DNA from: Basidiobolus meristosporus CBS 931.73
Taxonomy: Eukaryota; Fungi; Basidiobolomycota
Direction: 5' to 3'
Length of the DNA: 64,000 nt
Assembly (NCBI GenBank): GCA_002104905.1
Contig: MCFE01000388.1
Location: 19,075-83,074 of the forward strand
Shown: positions 3,919 through 64,000 of the stretch, piece after piece
How positions within the stretch are numbered: the stretch's first letter is position 1
Layout: the number at the start of each line of letters is the position of its first letter
Made by a program: the position numbers and the translations under genes
The notes under the pieces: generated by a model
What the model was told of the DNA's origin: nothing
Seen by the model: the letters and a program-made list of their open reading frames with translations, nothing else
Database searches by the model: none

Positions 3919-4086
3919 ATATGGTCAACGCTTCGGCACAATTTCCCACAGACCAAATGAATGGTTACTGGTAGTTGGTTCCTAATTGTTGACTTGCCAT
4001 CTAGAGCACTTGGATAGCTATGTTAGCTATCATGGCAGTGACTTGGCCGTAAGATACCTAATCACCGTGGCATGTGCACATGATCC
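3919..4086 (-). repeat. 168-bp conserved core, copy A (candidate structured ncRNA)
   Basis: Identical (reverse complement) to 14546-14713 by direct comparison. Confidence 0.9.
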
Positions 4087-4596: not shown

Positions 4597-4668
4597 GGGC
4601 TCAACCGGGAATTGAACCCGGGACCTCCTCGACCCGAACGAGGAATCATACTACTAGACCATTGAGCC
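4597..4668 (-). tRNA. tRNA-Pro(CGG), copy A
   Basis: Cloverleaf: acceptor GGCTCAA/TTGAGCC, anticodon arm CCTCG-TTCGGGT-CGAGG, T arm CCGGG-TTCAATT-CCCGG. A T5 run follows on the coding strand. Confidence 0.9.
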
Positions 4669-5723: not shown

Positions 5724-7669
5724 ATGGAAGCTGACCAAGATCTGTTGGATTTATTAGACGAGATAGAAGAGCAGCAATCCCAGCAATCACAATTGAAGGT
5801 TCCTGAGGATGTACTAGAGATAGAGAACGATTCGAATGTAGTTGGTACTTTGCCGACCCCCAAGTTTCTTCGCACTGGACATACTTCCAAATCCAACGGA
5901 CCTGCGCCAGCCAGCCCTTCGATTGGTGGCGCACCTTCTAGTTCAAACAGGCATTTCCCAATTTCGGCCACCAACCTTTCGAATGGACCATCCCCTTCCC
6001 CCAAAGTTCAACCCACTTCCTCAGCTCCGACCCATTCTCAAGTAACTAGCACCAGTCAAGCACAGCCGCAATCCGGGAGTCAAAAGCTTAAAGGGTTTTT
6101 GTATACGAAGTCGAAGAATTCCCAAGTCTCTTCCAAAAATACGAGCATCCATAATCACCCCACTTCCAAGAAGGATGCTGACCAGCCACCGAACCCTAAT
6201 ACCGCTGTGAAATCTCCCAGCTGCGCTACAGAGACGGCACCTGCTCAGAACCGCACGAATGCTACCTCGGCTCTTCTACCAGCCAACCATCGACCAGTAC
6301 ACGAATCCCCAAATTCCCAGCAGAACAGCATCCCTAAGACGCCATCAAAACCCCAAACAGACTTCACGGCATCGTTCAATGCCAATCGTGTGGAAACGCC
6401 GACGAATCAATTACTTTCCAGATCGGCTTCTGAGCCGCGCCAAAACATTCAAAGCGCCAGCGCAGCAGCCGCCTCGCACATCGACAGGAGAAATTTCAGC
6501 ACCGGAAAGATCAATTCAAGAACGCGTAGATTACCAGGGCCTGCCGGGGATATTCTAGCCCTGGGTTCGTTCGACTCCAAGGCCAAGCCGATCCATCAAA
6601 GTGCCCCAGGCATCAGCCATCTTAGCACGCCGAAGACACCCTCGAGCAACCGACTTTCCACTTTCCAGGAGGACGATTTTATATCCGGGGCATGGTCGAA
6701 GATGCTGACCACGCTAAAGCTCCCCAAATACACCCCGGCCACCGCCCCATTCGTCAAGAACACCTCGCCTTTCCTCAACTACAACATCCAGTATATCTTG
6801 GAGCACGGGTTCCAAAAGAAAATCCCTTACGTGGTGTTGATGATAAAGGAAACAAGGTCAAACGAGATCAACGTCGGGGTGACGTTTATTGATCCTACCG
6901 GGGAGATTAGTGGGACCATTCATCGGAAAGTGGTCGAACTGTATCCAGATGATATCACCACCGGCACAGTACTGGTGCTGCAACAAGTAGGATGAATGCC
7001 ACCAAGGTCGCGAATATCCCCCAATGCTAATGGACCCTTTTGTTTCTAGGTATCTGTGTTTAGCCCCAGTCTGCACTCGCATTACCTCAATGTCACCCCG
7101 AAGAATATTGTCCATCTATTCCCGTCCAGCCGGGAGGAAATCCTTTCCCCCAATGGAACTCAGCCCGAACACCAGTATGGCGATCCTTCTGCATCCCCGC
7201 TGAAAGAGAAATCGAAATCGAAGCCCACCGACTCGATTTTCCATTCGCCAAAATCCCTTCCTAAAGAGGGTCAGCAGAATGTCGATGGATCATTGATGCA
7301 GACGAACCCCGCCATCGACTCGCCCTCCCGCAGCACAGATCTCCCGCTCTTTCTCAAACGCAAGAACTCCGAGTCGTTGAACGTCCTGGATGAGCCCAGG
7401 TTACCTGAGCCGAAGAGACAGCTGTTTACCGACCGACTGTTTAGTAAAAGTATCGAATCGCCCAAGCCCAAGCCCAAGCCCGAGCCGAGCCGATAGCTAG
7501 CACCACTGCGAACCAAAAGACCAGCTTCCTAAGCGTCGAGAAGTCCTCGCCGGACACGCCCGCGGCCTCGCAAATGCTGTTCTCGACCAGCCAACCGGTG
7601 GCGGAGGAGGATCTAGAATGTCTACTGGACGGCATCGAAGAGTCGTTTTTTGAAGACGATCTGATTTAG
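5724..7669 (+). CDS. HROB: Homologous-recombination OB-fold protein (HROB/MCM8IP, DUF4539-like); apparent frameshift near 7485
   Basis: Long low-complexity N-terminus, RRLPGPAG motif, then FIDPTGEISGTIHRKVV...GTVLVLQQ|VSVFSPSLHSHYLNVTPKNIVHLFP. One intron at about 6989-7050. The frame stops at 7496, but an acidic tail (EEDLECLLDGIEESFFEDDLI*) continues in another frame to 7669. Confidence 0.75.
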
Positions 7670-13244: not shown

Positions 13245-14327
13245 TACGGGTAAGCAAAAACGGGGAGATATTTCGAAAGAAGCAATTGCTAATGAGTTTG
13301 GAACTCTCATGACCCACATTCCCTTATATATTCCCACCAAAAATCGCGCCAGAATACAAATGACAAGCATTAATAACAACGATACCCACGGAAAAACAGA
13401 AAATAACAGATGTGAGGATAATTTCCTTAACAGTCGCATCGGCAATCTAAACATTGTTCTATTCCCCAGGTCTCTGTTTCGCTGGCAATCATTATCTTGT
13501 TGCGACCAGATCCTTTCAATGTTGTCGCTTTTCCTGATCTGCAGGTGAAGAGAGATTGGCGGTCTTGCCTGATGGGTAATTGTTAGGGCGAAGGCTTCAT
13601 TGTAGCCATTATACTAGCCATGTACTCTGGATTTCGAATGATCATCCGCCGTCATTGCATCTCAAAATCATCCTAGCCATTGTCTCCATTCACGTATTGT
13701 CCTCCAGGTGTTTCGAATGAAACACATATTACTAGAGCTGCTACACATCTCTAACCACGGTCTGCATAAAAACATCGTTTCAACATACATATCATTCATA
13801 TTCTAAGGTAAGACAACAATCGGTGCATGTATGCAACCCTATACTCCCTCCGATCATTATTGTCAATGGTGATGATATCGGCCTGGCGTTCGTTCGAAGG
13901 CCCCAGTCTAATGGTATATGCCAGTTGTCTGACCTACGATCGTCATTGTTGGCATTGAGTGCAAGCATTACCACCCAGCATACCAGAGATGCTCGATACA
14001 TTCTCGAGCCAAGCGAGGGGAGGGGGGTAGAATCGACAAATCACCGGGTGATGAGAGGGGTGTATGGGTGGCGAGAATGGAGACGTGAGGAGAGGAAGGG
14101 ATAGGGAAGCTGTATGAAGTCTGAATCCGACCAGAACAGGCAGCAAGTGTCGCATATAGAGATGCGTCAACACAAAAATCATCAAAGATGATCAAAGACT
14201 GATGGCTAAAGTAAGACAAGTGTATGCAAATGATCGAGAAATGTATAAAAAGTAGATCTACGCTAAATAAAGACAGACTGTACACAAACAGAAGGACGGA
14301 ACTGCTGGATTCATAACAAGCAGCAAG

Positions 14328-14399
14328 GGCTCAATGGTCTAGTAGTATGATTCCTCGTTCGGGTCGAGGAGGTCCCGGGTTCAATTCCCGGTTGAGCCC
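14328..14399 (+). tRNA. tRNA-Pro(CGG), copy B
   Basis: Same 72-nt sequence as copies A, C and D. Followed only by a T4 run (GTTTTGCTACAC). Confidence 0.9.
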
Positions 14400-14545
14400 G
14401 TTTTGCTACACTAGTTTACGTATGCTTTTGTCAGCCATAATTTCATTCTTGGACCCATGAATATTCCTATGCCCTCCTAAAATCAGTGACTTCCCACTAT
14501 CAAGAATTCCCTTTAAATAGGCGATGCTGTTCACCCGAAAACCTT

Positions 14546-14713
14546 GGATCATGTGCACATGCCACGGTGATTAGGTATCTTACGGCCAAGTCACTGCCAT
14601 GATAGCTAACATAGCTATCCAAGTGCTCTAGATGGCAAGTCAACAATTAGGAACCAACTACCAGTAACCATTCATTTGGTCTGTGGGAAATTGTGCCGAA
14701 GCGTTGACCATAT
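14546..14713 (+). repeat. 168-bp conserved core, copy B (candidate structured ncRNA)
   Basis: GGATCATGTGCACATG...GCCGAAGCGTTGACCATAT; five copies in the window. Confidence 0.9.
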
Positions 14714-15103
14714 CTCTATTCTCCACCAACAACAAAGATAAATTAGCCAGGGAAACCGGTTCCATAATGGTTCGCATTGGGACAAAGATCAATGTAGACT
14801 GGATCTACATAATAGGTGCTCTACTGCAAGAGAATTCCACGAGCCATGCGGATGAATCGTCTGTGATGTGGCATGGCTTCAAGACCACTGCTGCACATAC
14901 ACAGATTGAGGGGGAATTGATCCGAGACCCTCGGTGCGCGAAATCCAGTTCCCGCGAGAACCAAATGAAAAACTGCCATTCTTGTGTAAGATTGATGGCC
15001 TAATAAAGAAATCCCTAAGCGGGACGGGGGTCAGCCAGCACAACCCTGGATCAACCCAACCTTTGCGGCCCGGCCTTCCTTTCACTTCACCCAGCCAGCC
15101 AAC

Positions 15104-21802: not shown

Positions 21803-21970
21803 ATATAGTCAACGCTTCGGCACAATTTCCCACAGACCAAATGAATGGTTACTGGTAGTTGGTTCCTAATTGTTGACTTGCCATCTAGAGCACTTGGATA
21901 GCTATGTTAGCTATCATGGCAGTGACTTGGCCGTAAGATACCTAATCACCGTGGCATGTGCACATGATCC
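21803..21970 (-). repeat. 168-bp conserved core, solo copy E (no tRNA nearby)
   Basis: One edge mismatch versus copy B; flanks unrelated on both sides. Confidence 0.9.
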
Positions 21971-22130
21971 GAATTGTAATAGAGTGATTTGATCATCTTT
22001 TATAATGAATGTCTACGTGAGCAGGGTATGGGATAGCAAAGAAATCATTCAATACGAATAATAAATGAGTCGGAAATATTTACATATCGCATCAATCATA
22101 TCAGATTCAGATTTAGGCTCACGATCAGAA

Positions 22131-28715: not shown

Positions 28716-28787
28716 GGCTCAATGGTCTAGTAGTATGATTCCTCGTTCGGGTCGAGGAGGTCCCGGGTTCAATTCCCGGTTGAGCCC
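28716..28787 (+). tRNA. tRNA-Pro(CGG), copy C
   Basis: Identical 72-nt sequence; upstream flank unrelated to copy B. Confidence 0.9.
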
Positions 28788-29107
28788 GTTTTGCTACACA
28801 AGCTTACGTATGCTTTTGTCAGCCATATTTTCATATCTTGAACCCATGAATATTCCTATGCCCTCCTAAAATCAGTGACTTCCCACTATCAAGAATTCCC
28901 TTTAAATAGGCGATGCTGTTCACCCGAAAACCTTGGATCATGTGCACATGCCACGGTGATTAGGTATCTTACGGCCAAGTCACTGCCATGATAGCTAACA
29001 TAGTTATCCAAGTGCTCTAGATGGCAAGTCAACAATTAGGAACCAACTACCAGTAACCATTTATTTGGTCTGTGGGAAATTGTGCCGAAGCGTTGACCAT
29101 ATTTCTA
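28716..29107 (+). repeat. Copy C: tRNA-Pro head + spacer + 168-bp core (core 28935-29102)
   Basis: Colinear with 14328-14718. Similarity begins at the tRNA first base and ends just after the core; two C-to-T changes in the core. Confidence 0.9.
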
Positions 29108-46677: not shown

Positions 46678-47789
46678 TCTATATGAATAATATATAATAA
46701 AATTAATCTCTAGAATTTTGGTCAACTGCATATCATGAATGTTGAGATTTATAAACAATATAGGTGCTAAACTAGATAGCCCTAAGTTTTTGTTCAGCCA
46801 ATGTCTTAGTCCTGACAAAGAATTTGGACAGTAGGACTCATAAGCTATGATCTCAGTGACCAAGCTAATGGAATGTATATATGAAATCTGCAACAAGGCC
46901 ACCAGAGTCATCCTGTTCATCCCACAAGAATTTAACAAGGTAAAACTCATTCTTCTCAAACTACCTATACTACACGCTAGAGTTCTTATTTGGCCTACTG
47001 AGTTAGTGTTACGTTCAGTCTTGATTGCCTCAATTTATTATCACAGTAAAAAAGCTATTCATTATATAATCACATAGTTTGATTCTGTATTTGGGATTTT
47101 GGAGATGTTGGAAGTGACTGGAAAACCTTGTTTGTCATGTAATCTTCACTTAATAGTCTATTAAATGCAAAAGAGGTATTTATACTTTTGAAGGTTTCGG
47201 CAAGGAAATATGCGGAACATGTCCTTAGAACAATAAGGCTCGTAAATTAGGCTTTAAGTGACGAAGTTAATGTAACTATTTCTGCATAAACATGAAATTT
47301 ATAACAGATTCAACTAAGTACTACTTTGTATTCTATGCTCCAATACAAAAGCCATCAATTTCAGCGCTCTACTATTCTCAAAGGAACTTAGCTGTGCGCA
47401 GTATATGTATTATCGTAGCTAGTAACCGCAACGGCTTGAAATTTCGCATACTACTTCCTGGGGCATTCCTGAAAGTATCTCTAGCCCCACTATATTTCCA
47501 CTCAATAAATTCAAGAAGTGAAAATCACACTTTTTAATACCGCAGATCACTTACAGGTTTCCTAATCGATTTGCTATAACTACCTGATTAAGACCGATAA
47601 TTAAATAATGATCAGTGGCATTTGTTTCCCATGCCAAGTGAGACATTGGCTAGTCCAATGATTCCAGGGCTGTGGATTTAAGGTTTGGCTACGGAATTTC
47701 CCACACGTCATCGCTGCTCTCGACTATTTAAAAGTCTGTTTCCCGACCTGCCACTCACAAATCATTCCATTCAACCATCTAAAATCGTA

Positions 47790-50495
47790 ATGAATACTCA
47801 AGCAAAGCGAGCTGGTTCCTCGTATGAAGGAGCCCTGAGTGCGGTTACTGCGGTGAAGTTAAAGGAATTAGAGATCCAGAAGTTCAAACTCGATGCACAC
47901 TACAACCAAGTTCTAAAAGAGGCGGAGGAATGTCCCGAACTTCTGAAAAAACTGGATATCCTCTACAAAGGTATCAAGCAGGCTCCAGTCCCACAGCAGG
48001 ATTCTGCGCTTGAACTGGACAATGTAGAGATTCTGCTCGAACAAATCTCTGATGACCCTTCAACGAGTACCCAATTTATGCAATACTGGAGCGACCGGTT
48101 GACAAATGAAATTCAGTGCGCACAGCGACGTAGCGAATACGCGTTTCTCTACGGACGGCTCATATCGGAGTGGATATCCTCTGGTTCGGGTTTCACCGAT
48201 AATGCCACCACACCGGAAGACATGAAGCCGGAAACCCTAGCGGAGGAGGCCTCTGCGAAACTGGAGACGGAACAGCAGCTTCGGAGCATGATTTTCGCAC
48301 CCGCCAAGATTGAAGTGGAAAATGTCCAAGCTTTCCTACACAACGAGATCTTCAACTTCGACAGCAAAGAAGACAAGGAATTCCTAGAGACCATCCGCGA
48401 GGACGTGAGGCAATTTGGGGACAGCCTTTGCAATATAGTGGTATCGCAGGATACGGTCAAACACACTATCGATGGATTGCTGAAAACAGATCTCTTGTCG
48501 GCTGACAATCAGTCAATGCTACGGGAAGTCCGTACCAATGAGATGATCTTAATGGAGTTTGCATCGGTTTTGAATGTTTTGCTGCGCAACCTTAAGAACT
48601 GGCATTGGCCTGAAGAGGGTTTGCCCATAGAGCTTCGTCGAGGTATAAACGGGAAGTACCGCGCTTTCATGATGGAGGATATCATCACTGCCTTGTTTCT
48701 GCAGTACATCGGTGCCGAATGGTGTGTGTTTCTGAAGCAGAAATTCATTTCCATCTATGAATCGAATTTGTGGAGCAAACCAGATGTGCTTCACAAAGGT
48801 ACCATCGAAGGACATCGGCAGGCCCTCCAACGATCCACTTTCCTCTTATCATCGCTTCCTAATTCTGTCGAGGAGCAGGCTGTTAATGCCTACAGCGACG
48901 ACCACAACGACGCCACAGATGAAAAGGGTGGTGCAAAGAGTGCAATGGATATCAAGCATGGCCTTCTCCACTTGCTGAACGTGGAAGCTCGCCTACACCA
49001 AACGTTGAAGCCTGACCAGGCGTTCACTATAGTTCGTTCAGATTTCGAATGGTTCGGCCCCTCTATCCCGCATCAGGTGATCCTGGTATTTCTAGAATTC
49101 CTTGGTGTTCCCAAGCTATGGGTGGATTTCTTTCATCAATACCTAAAAACACCTGTGCTGCTCCCCTCAGACAAGACTATGCATGTGCGCCAGCGAGGAG
49201 TGCCGATTTCCTACTTGTTGTCCACCGTGTTTTCGGAGACCTTGCTATTTGGATTGGATCTGTACGTCAACCGCTCAACCGGCATCTTCCTTTACCGCAT
49301 CCACGATGACCTATGGTTCTGGGACAGCGACACCGAGAAGGTTGAGTTGGCATGGAACAACATCAACAGGTTCTCTGATGTTATGGGTCTTAAGCTTAAC
49401 TTGGAGAAGAGTGGCTCGGTGTCGATTTTCTCGAAAGAGAAGCTCAGCGAAATTGCCACCTCCGACGTCCCGATAAGCGGTTTGCCATCTCCCTCGCCAG
49501 TATATTATGGGCAAGGATCGCTTCCACAGGACACAGTGAAATGGGGATTTCTTGTTTTACACTCCGATGGAGCGTTCCATGTTGATCATTCGAGTATGAG
49601 AACGTACATTGAAGAGATGGAGGGCCGGCTAGCCGCTGCGAGCTCCATCATTGAATGGGTGAACACATTCAACAAATACATTGCGTTCTTTTTGCGGAAC
49701 TTTGGCAAATACGCTAATGTGTTCGGTACACAACACGCGGACCAAATCATCGAAGCGCTGAAGATGATCGAGTCTACAATCTTTAGAGAGTACAACGGCA
49801 ATATGCTCGCCCATGTGTCCTCCATGATCAAGGATCATATACCCTCGTTCCAGGAATGCAATATTCCCGACGCCTGGATGTACTGGCCCCTTACTTCCGG
49901 GGGACTGGGCCTAATCAGTCCGTTCCTAATGATAGTATTACTTCGGGCATCGTTGAAGTCCAACAAGTGTCCCGAGGGATTCAATCACCTACTGGAGAAG
50001 GATGCCATGCTGTATAATAAGCAAAAGGCTGCGTATGAGAAAGCTAGAGGTCCTGTATATCGCTATGCAGACAGTGAATGGGACGAGCTCGATGATGTCG
50101 ATTCCGACGACAAACAATTCGCAGGGATACTTGTGGAGGAGAGAGCAGAAGATGGCCACAAGGTCAAAAGAATGCTCTCCTTTGAAGAATACTGCGAGGG
50201 TCGCGAGTCTAGACTTGCGCATTGGTATGCATTGTATGAAGAACTACTCTCGAATACACAATTTGAAGTGCCATCGTTGCCAATGCCAATGTCCGAAAAC
50301 TACTATGACCTTACCAGTCGAATGGATGGTGGCGATTCCGACGGAGATCTAGGCACTTATTGGAAATGGATCGTGTGCCATTATTCCAGCCAGCTCCTTA
50401 GCATGTTTGGAAATCTTCACTTCATGAATTCAGAGTTGGTTCCCATGGGCTTATTGTCTGTACTGAAGACCATGAAAGTGAAGTTTGAGGAGTAA
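47790..50495 (+). CDS. rvt: Cellular reverse-transcriptase-related protein of the rvt family (about 901 aa), intronless
   Basis: N-terminal LSAVTAVKLKELE coiled coil; GKYRAFMMEDIITALFLQYIG; RT motifs SDFEWFGPSIPH, RGVPISYLLS and LYRIHDDLWFW (HDD catalytic variant); WMYWPLTSGGLGL; C-terminal YWKW. No endonuclease, RNase H, integrase or LTR/TSD seen. First ATG at 47790 (the ORF-track start is TTG). Confidence 0.88.
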   Translation: MNTQAKRAGSSYEGALSAVTAVKLKELEIQKFKLDAHYNQVLKEAEECPELLKKLDILYKGIKQAPVPQQDSALELDNVEILLEQISDDPSTSTQFMQYWSDRLTNEIQCAQRRSEYAFLYGRLISEWISSGSGFTDNATTPEDMKPETLAEEASAKLETEQQLRSMIFAPAKIEVENVQAFLHNEIFNFDSKEDKEFLETIREDVRQFGDSLCNIVVSQDTVKHTIDGLLKTDLLSADNQSMLREVRTNEMILMEFASVLNVLLRNLKNWHWPEEGLPIELRRGINGKYRAFMMEDIITALFLQYIGAEWCVFLKQKFISIYESNLWSKPDVLHKGTIEGHRQALQRSTFLLSSLPNSVEEQAVNAYSDDHNDATDEKGGAKSAMDIKHGLLHLLNVEARLHQTLKPDQAFTIVRSDFEWFGPSIPHQVILVFLEFLGVPKLWVDFFHQYLKTPVLLPSDKTMHVRQRGVPISYLLSTVFSETLLFGLDLYVNRSTGIFLYRIHDDLWFWDSDTEKVELAWNNINRFSDVMGLKLNLEKSGSVSIFSKEKLSEIATSDVPISGLPSPSPVYYGQGSLPQDTVKWGFLVLHSDGAFHVDHSSMRTYIEEMEGRLAAASSIIEWVNTFNKYIAFFLRNFGKYANVFGTQHADQIIEALKMIESTIFREYNGNMLAHVSSMIKDHIPSFQECNIPDAWMYWPLTSGGLGLISPFLMIVLLRASLKSNKCPEGFNHLLEKDAMLYNKQKAAYEKARGPVYRYADSEWDELDDVDSDDKQFAGILVEERAEDGHKVKRMLSFEEYCEGRESRLAHWYALYEELLSNTQFEVPSLPMPMSENYYDLTSRMDGGDSDGDLGTYWKWIVCHYSSQLLSMFGNLHFMNSELVPMGLLSVLKTMKVKFEE

Positions 50496-54000: not shown

Positions 54001-54555
54001 GTTTGCGGCTGTTTGGACAACCTATCAATATTTCATGTTCTGGGTACCTGATGTTTTGGTGAAATTATTCTAAGTATATCCCAACAAGGAATTTAGCCAG
54101 AATTCTCTAAGATTTGTAAATGATGATCTAAGAGACCAAGTTAAGTGAATATTTCGGTGTGATTACAAAACTTACAATAGATGATAGAACAGCGGTTGAT
54201 TAACATGAGTACTTTAGTCAAGGAGAAATATACAACAATCCTTTGTAGCACTATTACACCACAATAAAAGTATGCATATATTGCGTATACATTCATTGCT
54301 ATGGCACAGTACAGTACATCCCATTATGTTAACCCCCACCGGAGAAAATACAGAAGTACAATACTGCAATAAGCCAGAGGTGTTATTTCTTTTCGGCACT
54401 CTATGGCATTCAATAGATTTACCATCGTCAGATGCAATAAATCGTTTATCATGGTTGAAGCTCAAATGTAGCGCAGTATTCCGAGTTAGAATTGATACTG
54501 AACAAGTACAAGAGTTTATTGAATGTCTATCTACTTTATACACTGATATAGCCCT

Positions 54556-55283
54556 CTAGAGACTTGAGAACACCTTGATGGCATCCTCGGCGGTGGATCT
54601 TGCGCTTGCTGGGTTAGCTCCGGTGACAACTCGGCCGTCAGTTTGCGTGAAATCGGCAAATGGAGTAGGAGGTGCCACGTACTCGGCCCCAACGGCAGCC
54701 GCTCCTTCTTCGATTGTAGCCACATTGGCTGACTTGATAATGTCAAGCAGGCTCAACATCACCTCACCCTCGGTGGTGAACCCGGTGACCTTCTTGCCAG
54801 CGATGATGGATTTGCCTGTGGTGCTGTCAATGATGCCAGGGAGAATGGCTGGCCCATGGCACACGGCTGAAACAACCCCTCCACGCTTGTATATGTCCTC
54901 GGCAATATGCTGCAGGCCACGAGCCGTAGGGTAATCCCACAAGGTCGCGTGCCGGCAGAAGCAAAGAATAGGCCATAGTCGGCAGGGTTGAGGTCCGACG
55001 CCTTGCGAAGCTGTGAGTTCAGTTTGACATTGAAAGGATGCTCTGGATCGTCTAGCACTTTTTGGTCATCCTCGGTGAGAAAGTCTTCGACAATGGAGTG
55101 CTCGTCCACTCCGTAAGTGCCAGTCTCGGAGGCGAAGTCGACCTCGAACCCGGCCTCGACCAGTGCTTCGTATGGATGCAACGCTTCCGTATAGAAGAGC
55201 CCAGTCTTGCTGCCATTGGCGTAGAAGGGCTCGTTATAGCTGGTGATGGCAAGTAGTGCTCTGCGTGGAAGATTGGCTGGCAT
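54556..55283 (-). pseudogene. DJ-1/PfpI (Hsp31-like glyoxalase III), frameshifted copy
   Basis: Near-identical to 62056-62784, but GTGCCGGC replaces GTGCCCGGC at about 54952. The gene is split into two ORFs, leaving the AVCHG nucleophile out of frame. Confidence 0.75.
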
Positions 55284-56203
55284 TGTTGTGTTGTGCTGAA
55301 TACCTACCTGAACCCATTGTGTCGCTTTTTTTATACTGGGTTCTTGCAGTTGGATGACAAATGCTTGGAAATTTCTGGTTAATTTCCAAGATTTTCACCT
55401 GACGCGTAACTCATTTGGCAATCGAGTTATCAATCCATTTATAGTCAGGGATGGTGTTGCTCCGAACGCATGCTGATAAATGGCATAAATAGCGGGTGGC
55501 AGTAACAATAAGTAGCGATTAAACAGACGTGAGAATACGGATGATATGACACTTTTGTGCTAACCATATTAAGTTATCTACACCACTTCAACGGGTATTT
55601 TTATTAATCTAATCGGGAATTATGTTCCACCGTAGAATTCAGGGATAGTGAAGCCACTCTAGTGCAGTAATTTATGCTCACTGGACTATATCATTGGCCA
55701 AGTAGACGAGAAACACAAGCTGGTAAAATGCAAAATACCTGTTGAACCCTAATGCGAGATACCCAGATCGGGCCAGTATAAAATAGAATTTCACACTTTC
55801 GGGTTTCTAACACTATCGAGCGCTGTTGCTAGGAATTAAGGCCTGTGTGATATTACAAGACCCACATTTATTTTCAAGCTCACCACCGTTTAGTATATGA
55901 TCATTACCATGCAGCTTTGGCTTTGGTTTGAACATACACTCTTGAGCCTCGCTACATCATATATTTGCGCTAAAATTTTGTTATGAAACCCAAGTCAAAC
56001 CTGTCATCGTTTTGGTGTACTAAGACCTTCCTTCATTTTGAGCGTAGAACCTGCTTTTAAGCTCACTTCTTGTTTTACTTGCAGTTATAAATTTCCATCT
56101 TTTAGCATTCATGCAGGCGAGATTATGGGCTAACATACCTATATGTGTTTCGATCACCTGCACATTCTGGTCAGGTTTAAGAGTGCATCGATGGCTTGCA
56201 ACT

Positions 56204-56276
56204 GGGGCGTTGGCCTAATGGATAAGGCATCAGACTTCGGATCTGGGGATTGTGGGTTCGAGTCCCATGCGCCTCG
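56204..56276 (+). tRNA. tRNA-Arg(TCG)
   Basis: GGGGCGT/GCGCCTC acceptor, D arm GCCTAATGGATAAGGC, anticodon arm TCAGA-CTTCGGA-TCTGG, T arm GTGGG-TTCGAGT-CCCAT. Confidence 0.88.
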
Positions 56277-57262
56277 TGAATATTTTGTAACCTTCATGAA
56301 ATACCAGTCCTGCTCTAACGCTCAGCAATAGCTTTGCGAGTTTGTTTTCACCTCTTTGTTTACTGAGAATGTTTATAGCGATATACATGGTAAAATGATG
56401 GATCTCATTCGATCTCTGTCAAAAGTGTAGTTCTTGTAGAGGGTTTGAAATCATGATCTCACCGAAGATAATGACTGAACCTTTCAAAAGGGGTTTGTAT
56501 TCTCAAAGAGCTCAAAAACAGCGATAAGTTCTGGCAGACCGGGCTTTGACAAACATCCAGGCATAATTGGGATGAGGTGGTTCTCTGAAATTGTTGGATG
56601 GTGGCAATTACTTTGTCAGAATGTTGTGCACGCTATATAATGAACGGTTAAGCACAGGCCTGACTACAGAAGCTATGCATATACAGCATTCCCAAACTAA
56701 ACCTGATCCATTTAATGCAGTTACATTAGGATGTTAACAAACTCAATATGGAGTACAAGTAGAATGTGCAAGATCACGTAGTTTGAGTTGGTCTACAATA
56801 CTTGGAGTTTATATGGATTCTAGAGGTTATCAGTTTCAAAGCATAAAGCCTGGACCTTACTAAAACTTAAAGAGCAGATTGAATTGGTATTTTGGTGGTT
56901 TGGAAGCTAAGCTTGAGAGTGGTTTATTTTTGTTACATGCTTAAAAGAATAATGTCCTTTAAAAAGAATGGAATTAGATAACATGTATGTTATCTTATAG
57001 ATTTGATGGGGTAGTGTAAGAATATCTCTTAAAAGGTTAGGATGGTGACCTGTAGAAATATGTTCAAAATAATACTTGTTTCTACTGCTCTTCTTACTTC
57101 TAACTAAACTTCGACTCTATTTGATTGGTATTTATACCTTATTGTGAGTCTAGTGATTTGTCTTATTTTGCTTTTCCCTGGCTACTAAGTCATCTTTGTA
57201 TGCGTTGATATCACTTAATATTGGGTGACTCGTTACTCTGTAATAATAACAATTTATACGGG

Positions 57263-57334
57263 GGCTCAATGGTCTAGTAGTATGATTCCTCGTTCGGGTC
57301 GAGGAGGTCCCGGGTTCAATTCCCGGTTGAGCCC
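57263..57334 (+). tRNA. tRNA-Pro(CGG), copy D
   Basis: Identical 72-nt sequence; upstream flank unrelated to copies B and C. Confidence 0.9.
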
Positions 57335-57989
57335 GTTTTGCTACACAAGTACAAGTATGCATTTATCAGTCGATGTTTTTATACATGGACTTATGATAAT
57401 TCCCCAACCCTCCCAAAATCAGTGACTTCCCACTAACAAAAACTCCTGACAAATAAGCGATGCCTTTCCCGGAAAACGTCGGATCATGTGCACATGCCAC
57501 GGTGATTAGGTATCTTACGGCCAAGTCACTGCCATGATAGCTAACATAGTTATCCAAGTGCTCTAGATGGCAAGTCAACAATTAGGAACCAACTACCAGC
57601 AACCATTCATTTGGTCTGTGGGAAATTGTGCCGAAGCGTTGACCATATCTCTATTCTCCACCAACTACAAAGATAAATAGCCAAGGAAACCGGTTCCATA
57701 ATAGTCCGCAATGCAACCCAATCCATAGTGGAGCTACATAATAGGTGCTCTGCTGTAAGAGAGCCCCATGAACCATACTTCTGCGATATAATATGGCTTT
57801 AGGGCTACTGTTGTGCATACCCAGAAGGAGGGGAATTGATCCAAAATCCAAGTGAAAAGCCAGCATGCTTGTGAAAGATGGATGAGCTAAAAAAGAAATC
57901 CCTCAACGGGACGGAGTTCGCAACCACAATCCTGGATCAACCCATTCTCCGCGGCCCGACATTCTTTTCACTTCACCCAGCCAACCATC

Positions 57990-58073
57990 ATGTTGACCAA
58001 GCCACGGGATTTCTTCTTCGGTGCGGACAACTGCTTGTACCCGCCGGCGCTCGGAGTATACGATGAGGTGTGA
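57990..58073 (+). pseudogene. SDT1 exon-1 relic
   Basis: MLTKPRDFFFGADNCLYPPALGVYDEV* versus MLGAKLHFTKPGVFFFDVDNCLYSPALGIYDMMCT: 18-nt deletion, catalytic Asp to Gly, premature TGA. Confidence 0.85.
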
Positions 58074-58793
58074 ATCAGGTTCGGCCCATGATTCTTTTTT
58101 ACCCCGAAGGAAGACAGGCCAATCATAATCCACAAGCAAAGTTCCGGAATAATCTGCAATGTATATCTATGATTACCAACGTATATTTCAAGCTGATGCT
58201 AAGCAACCTGGGCGTATTTACAGTATTTAATCGCCTTATCCACTTTAGTTTTGGGCCTGAATATTAAAGTCAACTATATATCCTCAAATCCATCTTTAAA
58301 TTAAGAGACTATGTAAGTATCAGATTCTGCATGTTGCCGCTACAGGCCATTGTTCACGCAAATGCTCCCAGTCTCTCTTTTGCTGTTTCCACTATTGAGC
58401 AGTTTGTAGGTCTGAAGGCAAGCATGTGCAAGCCTGGGTTTTCTAATTAAATTTACCAGGTCATTGGACATCTATTAATAAAATTGATGCGAGCTTTGTC
58501 CCTACATGGTAACATTCTTATGAACCCAATATTGCATGGAACCCCCACTTCGCTATCAGCTTCTGTATCACTGGTTTAAGAAGATTCAGGCTGGTATGAT
58601 AAATTGCCTTCGCTTGTGTCAGAGTCACTATCATTTGCCAGAGCTTCCTCATTGATATTGATATTTTGCGATGGGTCCATCGCGGGTAACCCAAATACGT
58701 TTCTAGACATTATTTGAGCATTTTCTATCAAGTGAGGTTTTATTCGTATAGCATGAATATATGCCAGTCGATTGGCGGTTACATGCTTAAAGA

Positions 58794-60035
58794 TCAACTG
58801 GACAGCTTCTCCAGCAGCCAGTCAAATGTCACCTGTGCCAACCGTGATCCCGCACCAATATGACAATGCAAGCTGCCTCCTTCTTCTTGTGTTATCGTGA
58901 TGAGACCTTTTTCACACTGCAACTTCTTATAGATCTCTTCCGGCTGACCCTTAAGGAAGTGGTCATCCGGGGCATCCAGGACAAGCGTCGGGGTCTTGAC
59001 CTGGTCTATTATGGCCTCCATTGTGTACTTCTGTGCCCGACGAATCGCCTCCACTTCCGAATCTACTCCAAACACCCATTTCGCGTTGGACAAAGCCCAC
59101 TTGGTCCCTGTATTTTCCTGTTGCATTTTGCGAATAAAAGCGTTGACTTCGTCATCCCACTCATTGCTAATGAGGAAATTCCCGATCTGCGGGCCGCCAT
59201 CCTGGGAGTTATCCATGTCCATGCCCTTGCGAAAAACGCTGCCAAAATCGAACACACCGTCGTTGAGTACGACTGCAGCGAGGCGGTGCTCAAATGCGCT
59301 GGCGCGAGCAGCAAGGTACCCACCCATACTGATGCCAATTAGGGCAATCTTATTCTTCTCGACGAATGGCTGAGCGAGGCAGTAGTCAACGACGGGGGTG
59401 ACAACCTTTTCCCAATCTGGACGGAAGAGGAGCTTTTGGTGACGGACAGCACTTCCTTGGCCCGGGCCATCGAAGGCGAGTACATTCATGCCGAGCTCGA
59501 GGGCGGTGGCGCCAACAGAGTAGCTGACTTCTTCCATGGTCGAATCAAACCCTCCATTGACAATAATGAGTGGTCTAAGAGTGTCGCTGTTGTCTGGACG
59601 CATCAAGATACCAGGTAGCGTTGTTCCCTCATACGGTATCTTCACCTTCTCCGTCACATGCCGCATCAGCCTTGTCGCCTTGTAAAACATCTCGGAGCTT
59701 AAATCCGCCAACTTGTTGCTTAGGTCATCCTCCCACGGATTATCACGACGATAAAACTCAGCGGTGCGATAATAATTTGATGCGCGAAGAAACGCCTCTC
59801 TTGCGGCGGGGGTGTTGCCCTTGGTAAGACTAGTATTCGCATTTGCCACGGCACGGTCAGCAGCTGTCTGCCATTCGAGTAGCCAGCAGTCTGTGTCACC
59901 AGCAGGTATGCGTGAGCAAATTTGGATGACTTCGCCAATATCTGCTCCACCACAGTTGGCATACGCGGCTGCGCGAAGGGCCTCGAATCCAAAGGACTCG
60001 TCTTCAGGAAAGAGGAATTTAAGTAGATGCGCCAT
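58794..60035 (-). CDS. Alpha/beta-fold hydrolase (2,6-dihydropseudooxynicotine hydrolase / FrsA-like esterase group), intronless
   Basis: FGFEALRAAAY..GGADIGEV; AFLRASNYYRTAEF; IPYEGTTLPG; NGGFDSTMEE; FDGPGQG; nucleophile GISMGGYLA; DAPDDHF; HCHIG. Confidence 0.85.
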   Translation of the reverse strand: MAHLLKFLFPEDESFGFEALRAAAYANCGGADIGEVIQICSRIPAGDTDCWLLEWQTAADRAVANANTSLTKGNTPAAREAFLRASNYYRTAEFYRRDNPWEDDLSNKLADLSSEMFYKATRLMRHVTEKVKIPYEGTTLPGILMRPDNSDTLRPLIIVNGGFDSTMEEVSYSVGATALELGMNVLAFDGPGQGSAVRHQKLLFRPDWEKVVTPVVDYCLAQPFVEKNKIALIGISMGGYLAARASAFEHRLAAVVLNDGVFDFGSVFRKGMDMDNSQDGGPQIGNFLISNEWDDEVNAFIRKMQQENTGTKWALSNAKWVFGVDSEVEAIRRAQKYTMEAIIDQVKTPTLVLDAPDDHFLKGQPEEIYKKLQCEKGLITITQEEGGSLHCHIGAGSRLAQVTFDWLLEKLSS

Positions 60036-61642
60036 GGTTGAGATGAAATACACTGGAATGCTACCATCGATGGCTTATTTATAGTGCATATGAGAACACT
60101 TCGCTCACAATATATTTTCTAGGGCTTCACATCTACTGCCATATTTGGCGCATTAAAGTAATCAACGGGTATTCGGCGTCAGCACAGATGCCGGTGGAGG
60201 AAATCGCTTGTTTTCCTTTTCGTATTGCGATTGATCAGAACCCTGCTCAGTCGCAGTTTGGGTTAGGGTTTGATGGCACGCCAGGTAACCAATGCATTGG
60301 ACGAGTTTTAAAACACAATCACATGCCAACAAAGCTTCCAAAATAGTAGACATTGAACCAAGTATTATGGGCAATAATGGGCAATAATGGGCAATATCCC
60401 GGGCTTTCGATAATGGAAAATCGCTGATTGGAGTTGGAATGGACAGATGTGAAAGTACGTGGTTCAGCACATTGTTAAACTTGAGAACGATAAATATTGC
60501 GGACACGTGAAGGAAATAAGGCTGACCATGCGATTTCCAATATACGGAATAATAATGACAAAGTAGTTGGTGAGGATGGTCGATCCATCCTGTGAAAGCA
60601 CATCTCCTTTGATATCCTATAATATCACATTGTTTGTTACCACTGTTGGTGGTTCAGTCAATGATGGTGTCGATTCATTATAAAGGCTTGGGTCAAGTAC
60701 ACTGTTTTACAGGTGATGCATACTCTTAGCTTACCAAATAATGCGAAGACACACTTTCATTGAATTATCACCAATTCCACTATTGGTATAGCGGCGTGAA
60801 ATGTGTGTAATGGGCCGAAGTTGAACTCCAACATGGCTCACTATATATGGATAAGTGGGTTTCGTAATGCTAGCAATGAACAGAGTGGTGATCATTCAAG
60901 AAAGTAGGTGTGTTCCTGATGCCTGAGAGATCAAGCCATTGGGAGGCGCGTTACCCACAGATGAAGCAAGCATTCGCTAACCTAATAAAGAAGCCGTAAT
61001 ATATAGCATGATACATAACAACATGTATCTATTATGTCATTCTTCTAGCCTCCAGAGCACTTCCAATACTCCCTAGAGTATTGCAATATCTATGTCCATC
61101 AAATTTCTACAAGCTTATACTTTCACCTTCCAGCTCAATGTTATGCAAATTTGAAGGTATGCTAATGAGGTATGCACATAACTAGTCTTATTCAATCGCT
61201 GAAAACACTGCTGATTAAACACCTCAGAATTCACTCTTGATAAAAACGCACAAGTTACTTGACATGTCTTGAGCACTACTTTGGGAAGCTTATCCTACAT
61301 TACCAGAACCCTTTCTTCCAGAACTGTCTCTGTATAAACCTTGTAAAAGATCATAATTAGTTGTTAACATTCACAGTTTCTCAGCTCTCCACATTTGCAT
61401 AAGATTCCATTTAGATATGTCTCTCACTTCACTGCTTTCCCTTGATTCATGACAGCAGGAGAAAATGGCCTTGTAACTCGGCAGAAAGAGTGTCCGCCTC
61501 CAGAGGAGAAAGTTGTGGGCTTCACCCCCACTTGAGTCACAAATATTTTATCTAATGAGATTAGTTGAGAGGTATTTCTGGTACAGTCGAAATCATTTCA
61601 ACATCTCTGTTGGCATAAGTTATCTACCAGTTTCCTAGTATC

Positions 61643-61835
61643 TATGGGGATATATTCCAGAGAATATGGTTCCGACTGGCATTATCATTGATTTGAGTCG
61701 AGAAAAAGTATACAACAACCCTTTGTAGTACTACTACGCTACAGTAAAAGCATGCGTCTGGTCCATATACATGGAGGAGGTTTCATTGCTATGGCACAGC
61801 ACAGTACATCCCATTATTTCAACTCTCGCCAGTGA
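61643..61835 (+). pseudogene. Possible relic of a hormone-sensitive-lipase-type alpha/beta hydrolase
   Basis: VHIHGGGFIAM at 61761-61793 followed by a stop at 61833. The paralogous segment near 54290 has deleted the GGAGGAGGT core. Confidence 0.3.
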
Positions 61836-62055
61836 AAATGTGGTAGTCCAATGCTGCTATAGGTGGTCAGAAGTGTAGCCCGCTATTTCTTTTTGGTACT
61901 CTATGGCATTCAACAGGTTTAGCATTGTCAGATGCAAGAAATCGTTCATCATGGTCGAAGCTCAAATGTATTGCAGTATTGCGAGTTAGAATTGATACTG
62001 AACAAGTACAAGAATTTATTGAATGTCTATCTACTTTATACACTGATATAGCCCT

Positions 62056-62784
62056 CTAGAGGCTTGAGAACACCTTGATGGCATCCTCAGCGGTGGATCT
62101 TGCGCTTGCTGGGTTAGCTCCGGTGACAACTCGGCCGTCAGTTTGCGTGAAGTCGGCAAATGGAGTAGGTGGTGCCACGTACTCGGCCCCAACGGCAGCC
62201 GCTCCTTCTTCGATTGTAGCCACATTGGCTGACTTGATAATGTCAAGCAGGCTCAACATCACCTCACCCTCGGTGGTGAACCCGGTGACCTTCTTGCCAG
62301 CGATGATGGATTTGCCTGTGGTGCTGTCAATGATGCCAGGGAGAATGGCTGGCCCATGGCACACGGCTGAAACAACCCCTCCACGCTTGTATATGTCCTC
62401 GGCAATATGCTGCAGGCCACGAGCCGTAGGGTAATCCCACAGGGTCGCGTGCCCGGCAGAAGCAAAGAATAGGCCATAGTCGGCAGGGTTGAGGTCCGCC
62501 GCCTTGCGAAGCTGTGAGTTCAGTTTGACATTGAAAGGATGCTCTGGATCGTCTAGCACTTTTTGGTCATCCTCGGTGAGAAAGTCTTTCGACAAGGAGT
62601 GCTCATCCACTCCGTAAGTGCCAGTCTCGGAGGCGAAGTCGACCTCGAACCCGGCCTCGACCAGTGCTTCGTATGGATGCAACGCTTCCGTATAGAAGAG
62701 TCCAGTCTTGCTGCCATTGGCGTAGAAGGGCTCGTTATAGCTGGTGATGGCAAGTAGTGCTCTGCGTGGAAGATTGGCTGGCAT
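62056..62784 (-). CDS. HSP31: DJ-1/PfpI family, Hsp31-like glutathione-independent glyoxalase, intact and intronless
   Basis: TGLFYTEALHP (catalytic Glu), FFASAGHATLWDY, VSAVCHGPA (Cys-His), GKKVTGFT, GRVVTGANPASA. Confidence 0.92.
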   Translation of the reverse strand: MPANLPRRALLAITSYNEPFYANGSKTGLFYTEALHPYEALVEAGFEVDFASETGTYGVDEHSLSKDFLTEDDQKVLDDPEHPFNVKLNSQLRKAADLNPADYGLFFASAGHATLWDYPTARGLQHIAEDIYKRGGVVSAVCHGPAILPGIIDSTTGKSIIAGKKVTGFTTEGEVMLSLLDIIKSANVATIEEGAAAVGAEYVAPPTPFADFTQTDGRVVTGANPASARSTAEDAIKVFSSL

Positions 62785-63766
62785 TGTTGTGTTGTGCTGA
62801 ATACCTACCTGAACCCATTGTGTCGCTTTTTTTATACTGGGTTCTTGCAGTTGGATGACAAATGCTTGGAAATTTCTGGTTAATTTTCAAGATTTTCACC
62901 TGACGCGTAACTCATTTGGCAATCGAGTTATCAATCCATTTATAGTCAGGGATGATGTTGCTCTGAACGCATGCTGATAATTGGCATAAATAGCGGGTAG
63001 CAGTAACAATAAGTAGCGATTAAACAGACGTGAGAATACGGATGATATGACACTTTTGTGCTAACCATATTAAGTTATCTACACCACTTCAACGGGTATT
63101 TTTATTAATCTAATCGGGAATTATGTTCCACCGTAGAATTCAGGGGTAGTGAAGCCACTCTAGTGCTGTAATTTATGCTCACTGGACTATATCATTGGCC
63201 AAGTAGACGAGAAACACAAGCTGGTAAAATGCAAAATACCTGTTGAACCCTAATGCGAGATACCCAGATCGGGCCAGTATAAAATAGAATTCCACCCTTT
63301 CGCAACAAATGCTGCATTATTGGTCATCAACATCCATCAAAAGGTATTTCTTCTACGCACTTTCGGGTTTCTAACACTATCGAGCGCTGTTGCTAGGAAT
63401 TAAGACCTATGTGATATTACAAGACCCACATTTATTTTCAAGCTCACCACCGTTTAGTATATGATCATTACCATACAGCTTTGGCTTTGATTTGAGCATG
63501 TACTCTTGAGCCTCGCTACTCCATATATTTGCGCTAAAATTTTGTTATGAAACCCAAGTCAATCCCGGCATCGTTTTGGTGTACCAAGACCTTCCTTCAT
63601 TTTGAGCGTAGAACCTGATTTTAGCTCACTTCTTGTTTTACTTGCAGTTATAAATTTCCATCTTTTAGCATTCATGCAGGCGAGATTATGGGCTAACATA
63701 CCTATATGTGTTTCGATCACCTGCACATTTTGGTCAGGTTTAAGAGTGCATCGATGGCTTGCAACT

Positions 63767-63839
63767 GGGGCGTTGGCCTAATGGATAAGGCATCAGACTT
63801 CGGATCTGGGGATTGTGGGTTCGAGTCCCATGCGCCTCG
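63767..63839 (+). tRNA. tRNA-Arg(TCG), second copy
   Basis: Identical to 56204-56276. Confidence 0.88.
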
Positions 63840-64000
63840 TGAATATTTTGTAACCTTCATGAAATACCAGTCCTGCCCTAACGCTCAGCAATAGCTCTGC
63901 GAGTTTGTTTTCACCTCTTTGTTTACTGAGAATGTTTATAGCGATATACATGGTAAAATGATGGATCTCATCGATTCTCTATCAAGAGTGTAGTTCTTGT

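Follow-up and report, generated by a model that had tools for sequence, protein, structure and literature searches.

The DNA analysed here is a 64,000-nucleotide (nt) stretch of the genome of Basidiobolus meristosporus CBS 931.73, which we refer to as the window, and it carries several near-identical copies of a 168-base-pair (bp) module, the core, most of them downstream of a transfer RNA (tRNA) gene for proline. With positions 14546–14713 as the BLAST query, exactly five full-length 168-bp matches were found in the window, with 0, 0, 1, 2 and 2 substitutions. Copy B (14546–14713, plus strand) is used as the reference and presumably corresponds to a mature RNA of about 168 nt. Copy A (3919–4086, minus strand) is 100% identical to it; Copy C (21803–21970, minus strand; 99.4%) has a single change, 14709 C>T in copy B numbering; Copy D (28935–29102, plus strand; 98.8%) has 14615 C>T and 14673 C>T; and Copy E (57481–57648, plus strand; 98.8%) has 14615 C>T and 14665 T>C. 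A sixth copy, with its own tRNA-Pro gene, lies on contig MCFE01000466.1 of the same assembly, at 6352–6519 of the segment designated L003. The five window copies, with no more than two substitutions each, had been put forward in an earlier reading of the sequence (the original prediction), and all five were recovered where that reading had placed them.

Four of the five copies follow a tRNA-Pro(CGG) gene recognised by both ARAGORN and Rfam, again as predicted; these genes are at 4597–4668 (minus strand) for Copy A, 14328–14399 (plus strand) for Copy B, 28716–28787 (plus strand) for Copy D and 57263–57334 (plus strand) for Copy E. The tRNA and the core are co-oriented in all four cases, and in five of six when the whole assembly is counted. 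Copy C has no tRNA gene and its flanks are unrelated to those of the other copies; it is intergenic, between a myosin gene and an epimerase gene. Copies C and D are the two that were checked against gene models, and both are intergenic with no model over either. The core has no open reading frame (ORF), there being stops in all six frames, and no relatives were found for the small ORFs that overlap it.

The edges of the core are sharp in the five-copy alignment, running from (T/C)|GGATC to just past GTTGAC(C/T)ATAT, and these recurrent boundaries are those that the original prediction had described. The homology around the core is a patchwork. Copy D matches Copy B at 98% identity from the 5′ end of the tRNA gene to 7 nt beyond the core, and nowhere else; the homology of Copies B and E begins at the 5′ end of the tRNA gene and extends about 545 bp beyond the core; and Copies A and B share 334 bp upstream of the tRNA gene, the tRNA gene itself, and the core with a further 110 bp, with a spacer that is not shared. 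Copy A does keep the predicted order of tRNA followed by core across this different spacer, which is 508 bp long compared with 146 bp in the others, and just the 70 bp or so nearest the core resemble the spacers of the other copies. Both the homology edges and the mosaic structure of Copy A are explained if tracts of conversion or recombination were anchored in the tRNA gene and the core, the two conserved segments.

Copy E is an old paralogue of Copy B, with flanks about 70% identical, and the pair provides a measure of how selectively the core is conserved. When the two are compared in 40-nt bins, identity is 97–100% in the tRNA gene and 97–100% in the core, 72–80% in the spacer and 20–82% in the distal flank. 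Overall, 166 of 168 positions are identical in the core and 79 of 80 in the tRNA gene, compared with 421 of 601 in the spacer and downstream DNA (Fisher p=1e-19 for core versus flanks). Immediately downstream, a segment of about 50 nt (14714–14765, plus strand) is about 93% identical between Copies B and E and is shared with Copy A; Copies C and D and the other organisms lack it, and the flank that follows falls to about 70% between Copies B and E. As a guess, this segment may be a signal for 3′ end formation, or it may simply be a stretch that decays more slowly.

The contrast between Copies B and E could come from gene conversion inside one genome, and the comparison between species therefore counts for more. 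A sequencing-run index places the core in a soil metatranscriptome and among the runs of at least seven further organisms. Four of these runs (from organisms B, E and H, and the soil metatranscriptome) were compared with positions 14100–15100 at an 80% identity threshold, and in all four the similarity starts at 14544–14546 and stops at 14713–14720, with flanks beyond these points that are unrelated at that threshold. The foreign cores are about 91–98% identical to that of the window, differing at 3–13 positions; for scale, Nic96 coding DNA of B. ranarum and B. meristosporus is 69% identical (one locus). In the DNA run X3, the core is represented by a 170-nt contig with a depth of 24.7, compared with 3–8 for apparently single-copy contigs; this depth corresponds to about five copies and suggests that the X3 organism has about five cores with differing flanks, like the window. 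The tRNA-Pro(CGG) gene of the same organism reaches a depth of 269–732 against the same single-copy level of 3–8, perhaps 50–100 copies. There is no core in the 2.8 kb downstream of the B. ranarum Nic96 locus (L001, a 4.5-kb contig), and conserved 20–24-mers from the core have no matches in viral contigs, bacterial and archaeal genomes or Joint Genome Institute metagenomes, save for three chance 20-mers in coding-like DNA.

The core had been described as hairpin-rich. Folding energy does not bear this out, since the minimum free energy has a z-score of −1.0 on both strands relative to shuffled sequences, while comparison between species supports one hairpin in particular. Read on the plus strand, the core begins with a 5′ tail containing a 12-nt palindrome, CATGTGCACATG (14550–14561), that is invariant in the copies covering it. 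A predicted stem-loop 1 follows (14565–14596), with an invariant loop, AUCUUAC, in a region that never varies, and then a hairpin with a variable tip, GAUAGCUA-ACA-UAGCUAUC (14601–14619), nested in a predicted outer stem formed by 14595–14600 and 14632–14637 (UGCCAU/AUGGCA). The remainder is a predicted stem-loop 3 (14639–14708), long and irregular and closed by GUCAAC/GUUGAC.

Most of the substitutions in foreign cores lie in 14601–14627, and the cluster coincides with the hairpin at 14601–14619. Four foreign versions of this hairpin were rebuilt from the listed differences: GAUAACUG-AUA-CAGUUAUC in X16, GACAACU-AUUU-AGUUGUC in X13, GAUAGCUA-CCAAG-UAGCUAUC in X3 and GAUAACU-AAACC-AGUUAUC in X17. 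Compensatory double changes are seen at 14603/14617, 14605/14615 and 14608/14612, with pairing kept throughout, and Copies D and E carry the G.U intermediate of the pair 14605/14615. This shared C>T change and the G.U pair that it gives on the plus strand had been noticed in the original prediction; the copies that carry it are those at 28935 and 57481, not the pair originally named. Together these patterns are good evidence, from sequence comparison, that 14601–14619 forms a helix in a single-stranded molecule. Stem-loop 1, the outer stem and stem-loop 3 lie in invariant sequence, and covariation is consequently silent on them.

The core is also present in RNA libraries. One molecule in the soil metatranscriptome has a 138-nt insert (14571–14708) with Illumina adapters on both sides, and the depth of the conserved, highly multicopy tRNA-Pro there is 0. 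In X17, probably an RNA run, the depth is 146–387 for the core and 2.7 for the tRNA, a tRNA:core ratio of about 1:60–140, whereas in the DNA run X3 this ratio is about 25:1; contamination with DNA would give the opposite ratio to that seen in X17. The original prediction had proposed that the core is a selected, multicopy, structured non-coding RNA, and the contrast between paralogues, the sharp edges shared across species, the three compensatory pairs and the RNA libraries all support it.

These same observations bear on a reading in which the core has no RNA of its own and acts as DNA—a protein-binding site, an insulator or a recombination hot spot—or is uniform through conversion alone. The palindrome CATGTGCACATG does consist of two E-box-like half sites, and active conversion or recombination is evident from the patchwork of homology among the copies. 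Conversion within a single genome, however, cannot explain conservation in four other organisms with unrelated flanks, substitutions that preserve a hairpin are unexpected for a site in duplex DNA, and the depth of the core in RNA libraries is disproportionate to that of the neighbouring multicopy tRNA. We regard this as very unlikely, and as the least probable of the explanations weighed here.

Upstream of each core there are two motifs at similar distances. In Copy B, CTTCCCAC is at 14490–14497 (plus strand), which places TCCCA at −54, and the motif has the same position in Copies A, D and E; an A/T box, TTTAAATA, is at 14512–14519 (plus strand; −34 to −27) in Copy B and is also present in Copy D. 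In Copy C the corresponding motifs are ATCCCATA at 22027–22034 (minus strand; −64 to −57) and TATAAAA at 21998–22004 (minus strand), and the rest of its upstream DNA is unrelated to that of the other copies. All five copies thus have TCCCAY and an A/T box (−36 to −27), the boxes of Copies A and E being weaker, and both upstream flanks shown for organism B read TATAG at −32 to −28. The extended form [AT]TCCCAYA occurs 16 times in 128 kb when both strands are counted, five of these being inside cores and one being the site of Copy C itself (the ATCCCATA form), and from this rarity its chance presence in the right 20-nt window is about 1 in 500. TCCCAY and the A/T box could be a promoter of the type used by small nuclear RNA (snRNA) genes, with the A/T box as a TATA box.

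The upstream motifs are one of four lines of evidence that favour the plus strand as the one transcribed. In the soil metatranscriptome molecule, the adapter behind 14708 reads AGATCGGAAGAGCG, the form produced by read-2 read-through, so that read 1 is the minus strand; this would indicate a plus-strand RNA if the library was dUTP-stranded (prepared with deoxyuridine triphosphate), a weak indication coming from a single molecule. G.U pairs form on the plus strand at 14605/14615 and 14595/14637. The wobble-pair cases as a whole are two each way, with 14608/14612 in X17 and 14639/14708 in X13 being wobble-compatible on the minus strand only. From the adapter, the G.U pairs, the upstream motifs and a 3′ end resembling that of U6 snRNA (described below), we judge the plus strand to be distinctly the likelier of the two.

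A functional RNA could nevertheless be made from the minus strand, for example a guide-type RNA with two hairpins, in which case the promoter-like motifs on the plus side would be coincidental. As the original prediction pointed out, the minus strand reads GC-UUCG-GC; it also has an AGAGCA, matching ANANNA, at nt 85–90 and an ACA at nt 160–162, near its 3′ end, and it folds with the same minimum free energy as the plus strand. Against these, the AGAGCA is not in a hinge but in the internal loop of the covarying hairpin, two hairpins take the place of a single pocket hairpin in the 3′ part, and the ACA stands 6 nt away from the conserved end instead of 3. There is no conserved motif upstream of the minus-strand start, where flanks differ across copies and species, and the adapter orientation in X16 and the two G.U cases favour the plus strand. 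We consider a minus-strand RNA unlikely.

The relationship of the core to the tRNA gene upstream depends on where transcription by RNA polymerase (Pol) III ends. In Copy B, a run of four T residues (T4) at 14401–14404 (plus strand) directly follows the tRNA gene, and a second T4 is at 14426–14429. All of the tRNA-Pro genes have T4 at +2, with an extra T4 at +27 in Copies B and D or a T5 and a T4 in Copy A. Exactly T4 follows every tRNA gene seen in this genome, often within ATATTTTG; those surveyed are the four Pro genes of the window and one on L003, one Arg-CCG, one Leu-CAG, and three Arg-TCG, two of them on the L003 twin of part of the window (examples are at 14400–14404, 56277–56290 and 63840–63853 in the window and in the tRNA flanks of L003). 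This regularity indicates that T4 is a working Pol III terminator, and it seems to be the standard one in this fungus. Downstream of the core, in contrast, the first T4 is at +245 in Copy A, +428 in Copy B, +279 in Copy C and +317 in Copy E; only in Copy D is it close, at +6.

The original prediction had suggested that the core is co-transcribed with tRNA-Pro, and such a dicistronic Pol III transcript, from which the core would be released by RNase Z and trimming, accounts for several features: a co-oriented tRNA-Pro precedes the core in four of the five window copies and in five of the six known from the assembly, the core has no internal T4 on the plus strand, and in organism B a single contig joins the 3′ end of the tRNA to the 5′ end of the core, co-oriented (joint 14399>14546), which indicates that the linkage is old. 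Known dicistronic genes are similar in part. The tRNA-5S and tRNA-Trp-RUF70 genes of Yarrowia and the tRNA-snoRNA (small nucleolar RNA) genes of plants also place a multicopy small RNA downstream of a co-oriented tRNA, and RUF70 shows compensatory changes too. In the Yarrowia genes, however, a T-tract is missing between the two RNAs but present behind the second (PMC2566860), and here the terminators are reversed: T4 stands right after each tRNA-Pro, followed by a second T4 or by T5 and T4, and four of the five copies have none for at least 245 nt past the core (245–428 nt in Copies A, B, C and E). The spacer of 146–508 bp and the intact, tRNA-free Copy C also separate the core from a dicistronic gene. 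Co-transcription was rejected on these grounds and strikes us as highly improbable. The tRNA-Pro gene upstream is best explained as a separate Pol III gene, and its linkage to the core as an inherited arrangement that has been duplicated and, through recombination at repeated anchors, made partly uniform.

The tRNA genes also raise the question of whether the core is part of a mobile element. The CORE-, V- and Deu-SINEs are short interspersed nuclear elements derived from tRNAs, with a central domain that is conserved across species and a linking sequence that is variable, and the core could be the central domain of a retroposed unit with a tRNA-Pro head, its conservation reflecting selection on master copies. 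The likeness in the tRNA head, conserved domain and variable linker is plain, and the homology blocks fit as well: the left edges of the B-D (98%) and B-E blocks both fall within 1–2 nt of the 5′ end of the tRNA gene, and the B-D block ends 7 nt after the core, before a T4. The high amplification of tRNA-Pro(CGG) in the X3 organism points the same way. The supposed head, however, is a canonical tRNA (56 bits) of the same sequence in all copies that has one or two T4 terminators behind it, and is to all appearance a working gene; the core is present in about five copies in two genomes, not thousands; and no tail, direct repeats or target-site duplication flank Copy D. In Copy C and the foreign copies there is neither head nor spacer, and the core can stand alone with its own promoter-like motifs. 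Neutral copies would not hold 99% core identity at 30% flank divergence, the compensatory changes point to a working RNA, and gene conversion anchored in both conserved segments would equally produce the boundaries seen at tRNA and core. A SINE origin appears very unlikely to us, and with five or six near-identical copies seen, a T4 after the head and neither direct repeats nor a tail at Copy D, the core was not classed as a SINE.

DNA transposons and miniature inverted-repeat transposable elements (MITEs) were rejected as well, the ends of the core (GGATCATG... and ...GACCATAT) not being inverted repeats and there being no duplication in the flanks. A discrete mobile or protein-binding DNA unit, the other possibility that the original prediction had raised, is accordingly disfavoured by the absence of terminal inverted repeats, target-site duplications and a tail, by the low copy number, and by the promoter-like motifs, whose distances are kept although the upstream DNA is otherwise unrelated.

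No known RNA family was matched by the core. Covariance searches against Rfam 15 (with 651-, 186- and 89-nt queries) gave no match to it at the gathering score or at E≤10, in agreement with the failure of the original prediction to place it among known snRNAs, and the only Rfam matches in the window are tRNAs. There are no A or B boxes in the core. Box C/D snoRNAs were excluded, as CUGA is on neither strand and the nearest approach to a C box (RUGAUGA) is GUGAUUA at nt 22. Box H/ACA snoRNAs were also set aside, there being no ANANNA on the plus strand, and on the minus strand an AGAGCA inside the internal loop of the covarying hairpin and an ACA that is 6 nt distant from the conserved end, where 3 nt would be expected. 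For U6 and U6atac there is no ACAGAGA, even with one mismatch allowed, and in four of the five copies T4 does not follow the core closely, which sets it apart from Pol III genes of the U6 type. Comparison by eye with the sequences of U1, U2, U4, U5, U11, U12, U4atac, U6atac, U3, U7, 5S, Y RNA, RNase P/MRP and the telomerase template gave only coincidences of 7–9 nt, and the 3′ tail of U6 alone stood out.

The closest general resemblance is to genes of the Sm class of snRNAs (U1, U2, U4, U5, U11, U12 and U4atac). Like them, the core is about 170 nt long and multicopy, has no T-run terminator, and has a putative external upstream element together with an A/T box at about −30; it also combines extreme sequence conservation with variable hairpin tips and has a sequence, AUUUGG, resembling an Sm site. 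When tested against the consensus for an Sm site, RAU(3-6)GR, single-stranded and flanked by two stem-loops, this AUUUGG at nt 129–134 (14674–14679) is preceded by C instead of a purine and is predicted to lie in a hairpin tip, and its middle varies between versions (UUCAUUUGG, UUUAUUUGG and UUUGUUUGG). Unlike the Sm-class snRNAs, the core has no covariance-model match at E≤10 and no sequence for recognition of a 5′ splice site or branch site. The core also has UUAG|GUAUCU at nt 29/30, which with the Sm-like site recalls a spliced leader; trans-splicing is not known in fungi, and the prior for such an RNA is very low.

The 3′ terminal segment (14688–14713, plus strand) resembles the 3′ end of U6 snRNA (AAAUU-GUG-GAAGCGUU-CCAUAU). 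The last 27 nt of the core align with the U6 tail with 21 matches and three small gaps, at the extreme 3′ end of both RNAs, and the score of 27 compares with 13.4 ± 2.3 for shuffled sequences, none of 2000 being as high; the TATA-like box at −30 is a second point in common with U6. Because many RNAs were compared by eye, we treat this likeness as a lead and not as a finding. In other respects the core is unlike U6 (RF00026), having no AGC triad context, internal stem-loop, U-run end or Rfam match. The GAAGCG part of U6 pairs with the 5′ end of U2 to form U2/U6 helix II, and the RNA might in principle be a new, lineage-specific splicing snRNA whose U6-like 3′ end (GAAGCG...CCAUAU) pairs with a U2-type 5′ end or binds the proteins of the U6 3′ end, and which might replace U4atac. 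We consider this quite unlikely. Basidiobolus diverged early among fungi and has a very large genome with heavy gene duplication. B. meristosporus is published as the fungus richest in minor introns (PMC10639083), with the highest density known. U11, U12 and U6atac have been found in zoopagomycote and mucoromycote fungi, and for B. meristosporus U4atac only a ‘putative divergent’ candidate is reported (PMC11347168). By eye, however, the core has neither a K-turn nor complementarity to the conserved segments of U6atac, and with these hallmarks and a model match both missing it was not filed as U4atac. Beyond surveys of minor introns, we found no literature on small RNAs of Basidiobolus.

Taking these comparisons together, we think it probable, with appreciable room for error, that the 168-bp module is an orphan family of snRNA-type small RNA genes, transcribed from the plus strand under promoter elements of its own and linked historically to tRNA-Pro. 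On this reading the module encodes a structured non-coding RNA that is small and abundant; it is present in five to six copies and kept in related organisms, with each copy most likely forming its own plus-strand transcription unit. Transcription would start at the G of GGAUC and be driven by an external snRNA-type promoter made up of TCCCAY about 55–63 bp upstream and the A/T box at about −30. The polymerase would probably be Pol II, as no T-run follows the RNA, and processing near ...GUUGACCAUAU would generate the 3′ end. In the expected fold, a 5′ tail that contains the palindrome is followed by three stem-loops, the second of which has a tip that can vary provided that it pairs. That the rest of the RNA is almost invariant suggests dense contacts with proteins or other RNAs, as in a small nuclear ribonucleoprotein (RNP), and our best guess is a nuclear RNP role, perhaps connected with splicing.

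Several observations weigh against this reading. The core folds no better than shuffled sequence, and covariation supports one helix only. The wobble or mismatch at 14608/14612 (X17) and 14639/14708 (X13) and the cUUCGg tetraloop favour the minus strand, and the B-D and B-E blocks, starting exactly at the 5′ end of the tRNA, fit a retroposed tRNA-headed unit too. The RNA evidence comes from other organisms and from soil; the RNA status of X17 is a guess, and if that run is low-coverage DNA then the core is a high-copy repeat there.

Abundant small RNAs that are as conserved as tRNAs yet fall outside known families are rare in fungi, and a new one that is multicopy and snRNA-like could be the sign of a ribonucleoprotein not yet described. 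Even short of that, the core would add a family to Rfam and help to decipher the promoters of small-RNA genes in this lineage, and it illustrates cleanly how a working RNA gene can be told apart from a repeat linked to tRNAs. Should the RNA be lineage-specific and without a central function, its interest is modest.

Several other features of the window were noted. Its Nic96 ORF has 100% identity with a B. meristosporus CBS 931.73 protein encoded on contig MCFE01000388.1. The ORF of 936 amino acids at 47685–50495 (plus strand) has no Pfam match at E≤1e-3. Beside Copy E, at 58794–60053 (minus strand), is a gene for a FrsA-like/FUS2/psoB-like alpha/beta hydrolase, whose best non-self relatives are in Hypocreales ascomycetes (Pochonia, 68%) and in Streptomyces/Kitasatospora (about 49%). 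No B. ranarum orthologue is listed and none is found in Basidiobolus outside this assembly; the closest Logan contigs (L004 and L005) are GC-rich, non-Basidiobolus DNA without a core. On this sequence evidence the hydrolase gene is a candidate for horizontal transfer.

The end of the window that contains Copy E, 55794–64000, is an 8.2-kb twin of L003 1–8205 (MCFE01000466.1), at 98% identity. Besides a copy of the core, the twin includes the hydrolase gene, genes of the DJ-1/PfpI type, and tRNA-Pro and tRNA-Arg(TCG) genes. It could be a paralogue that arose by recent segmental duplication, or a haplotype that the assembly left uncollapsed. Within the window, 54213–55801 and 61693–63302 form a tandem duplication of about 1.6 kb (94% identity) with DJ-1/PfpI-type genes, each unit beside a tRNA-Arg(TCG) gene, and a third and a fourth such unit are present on L003.

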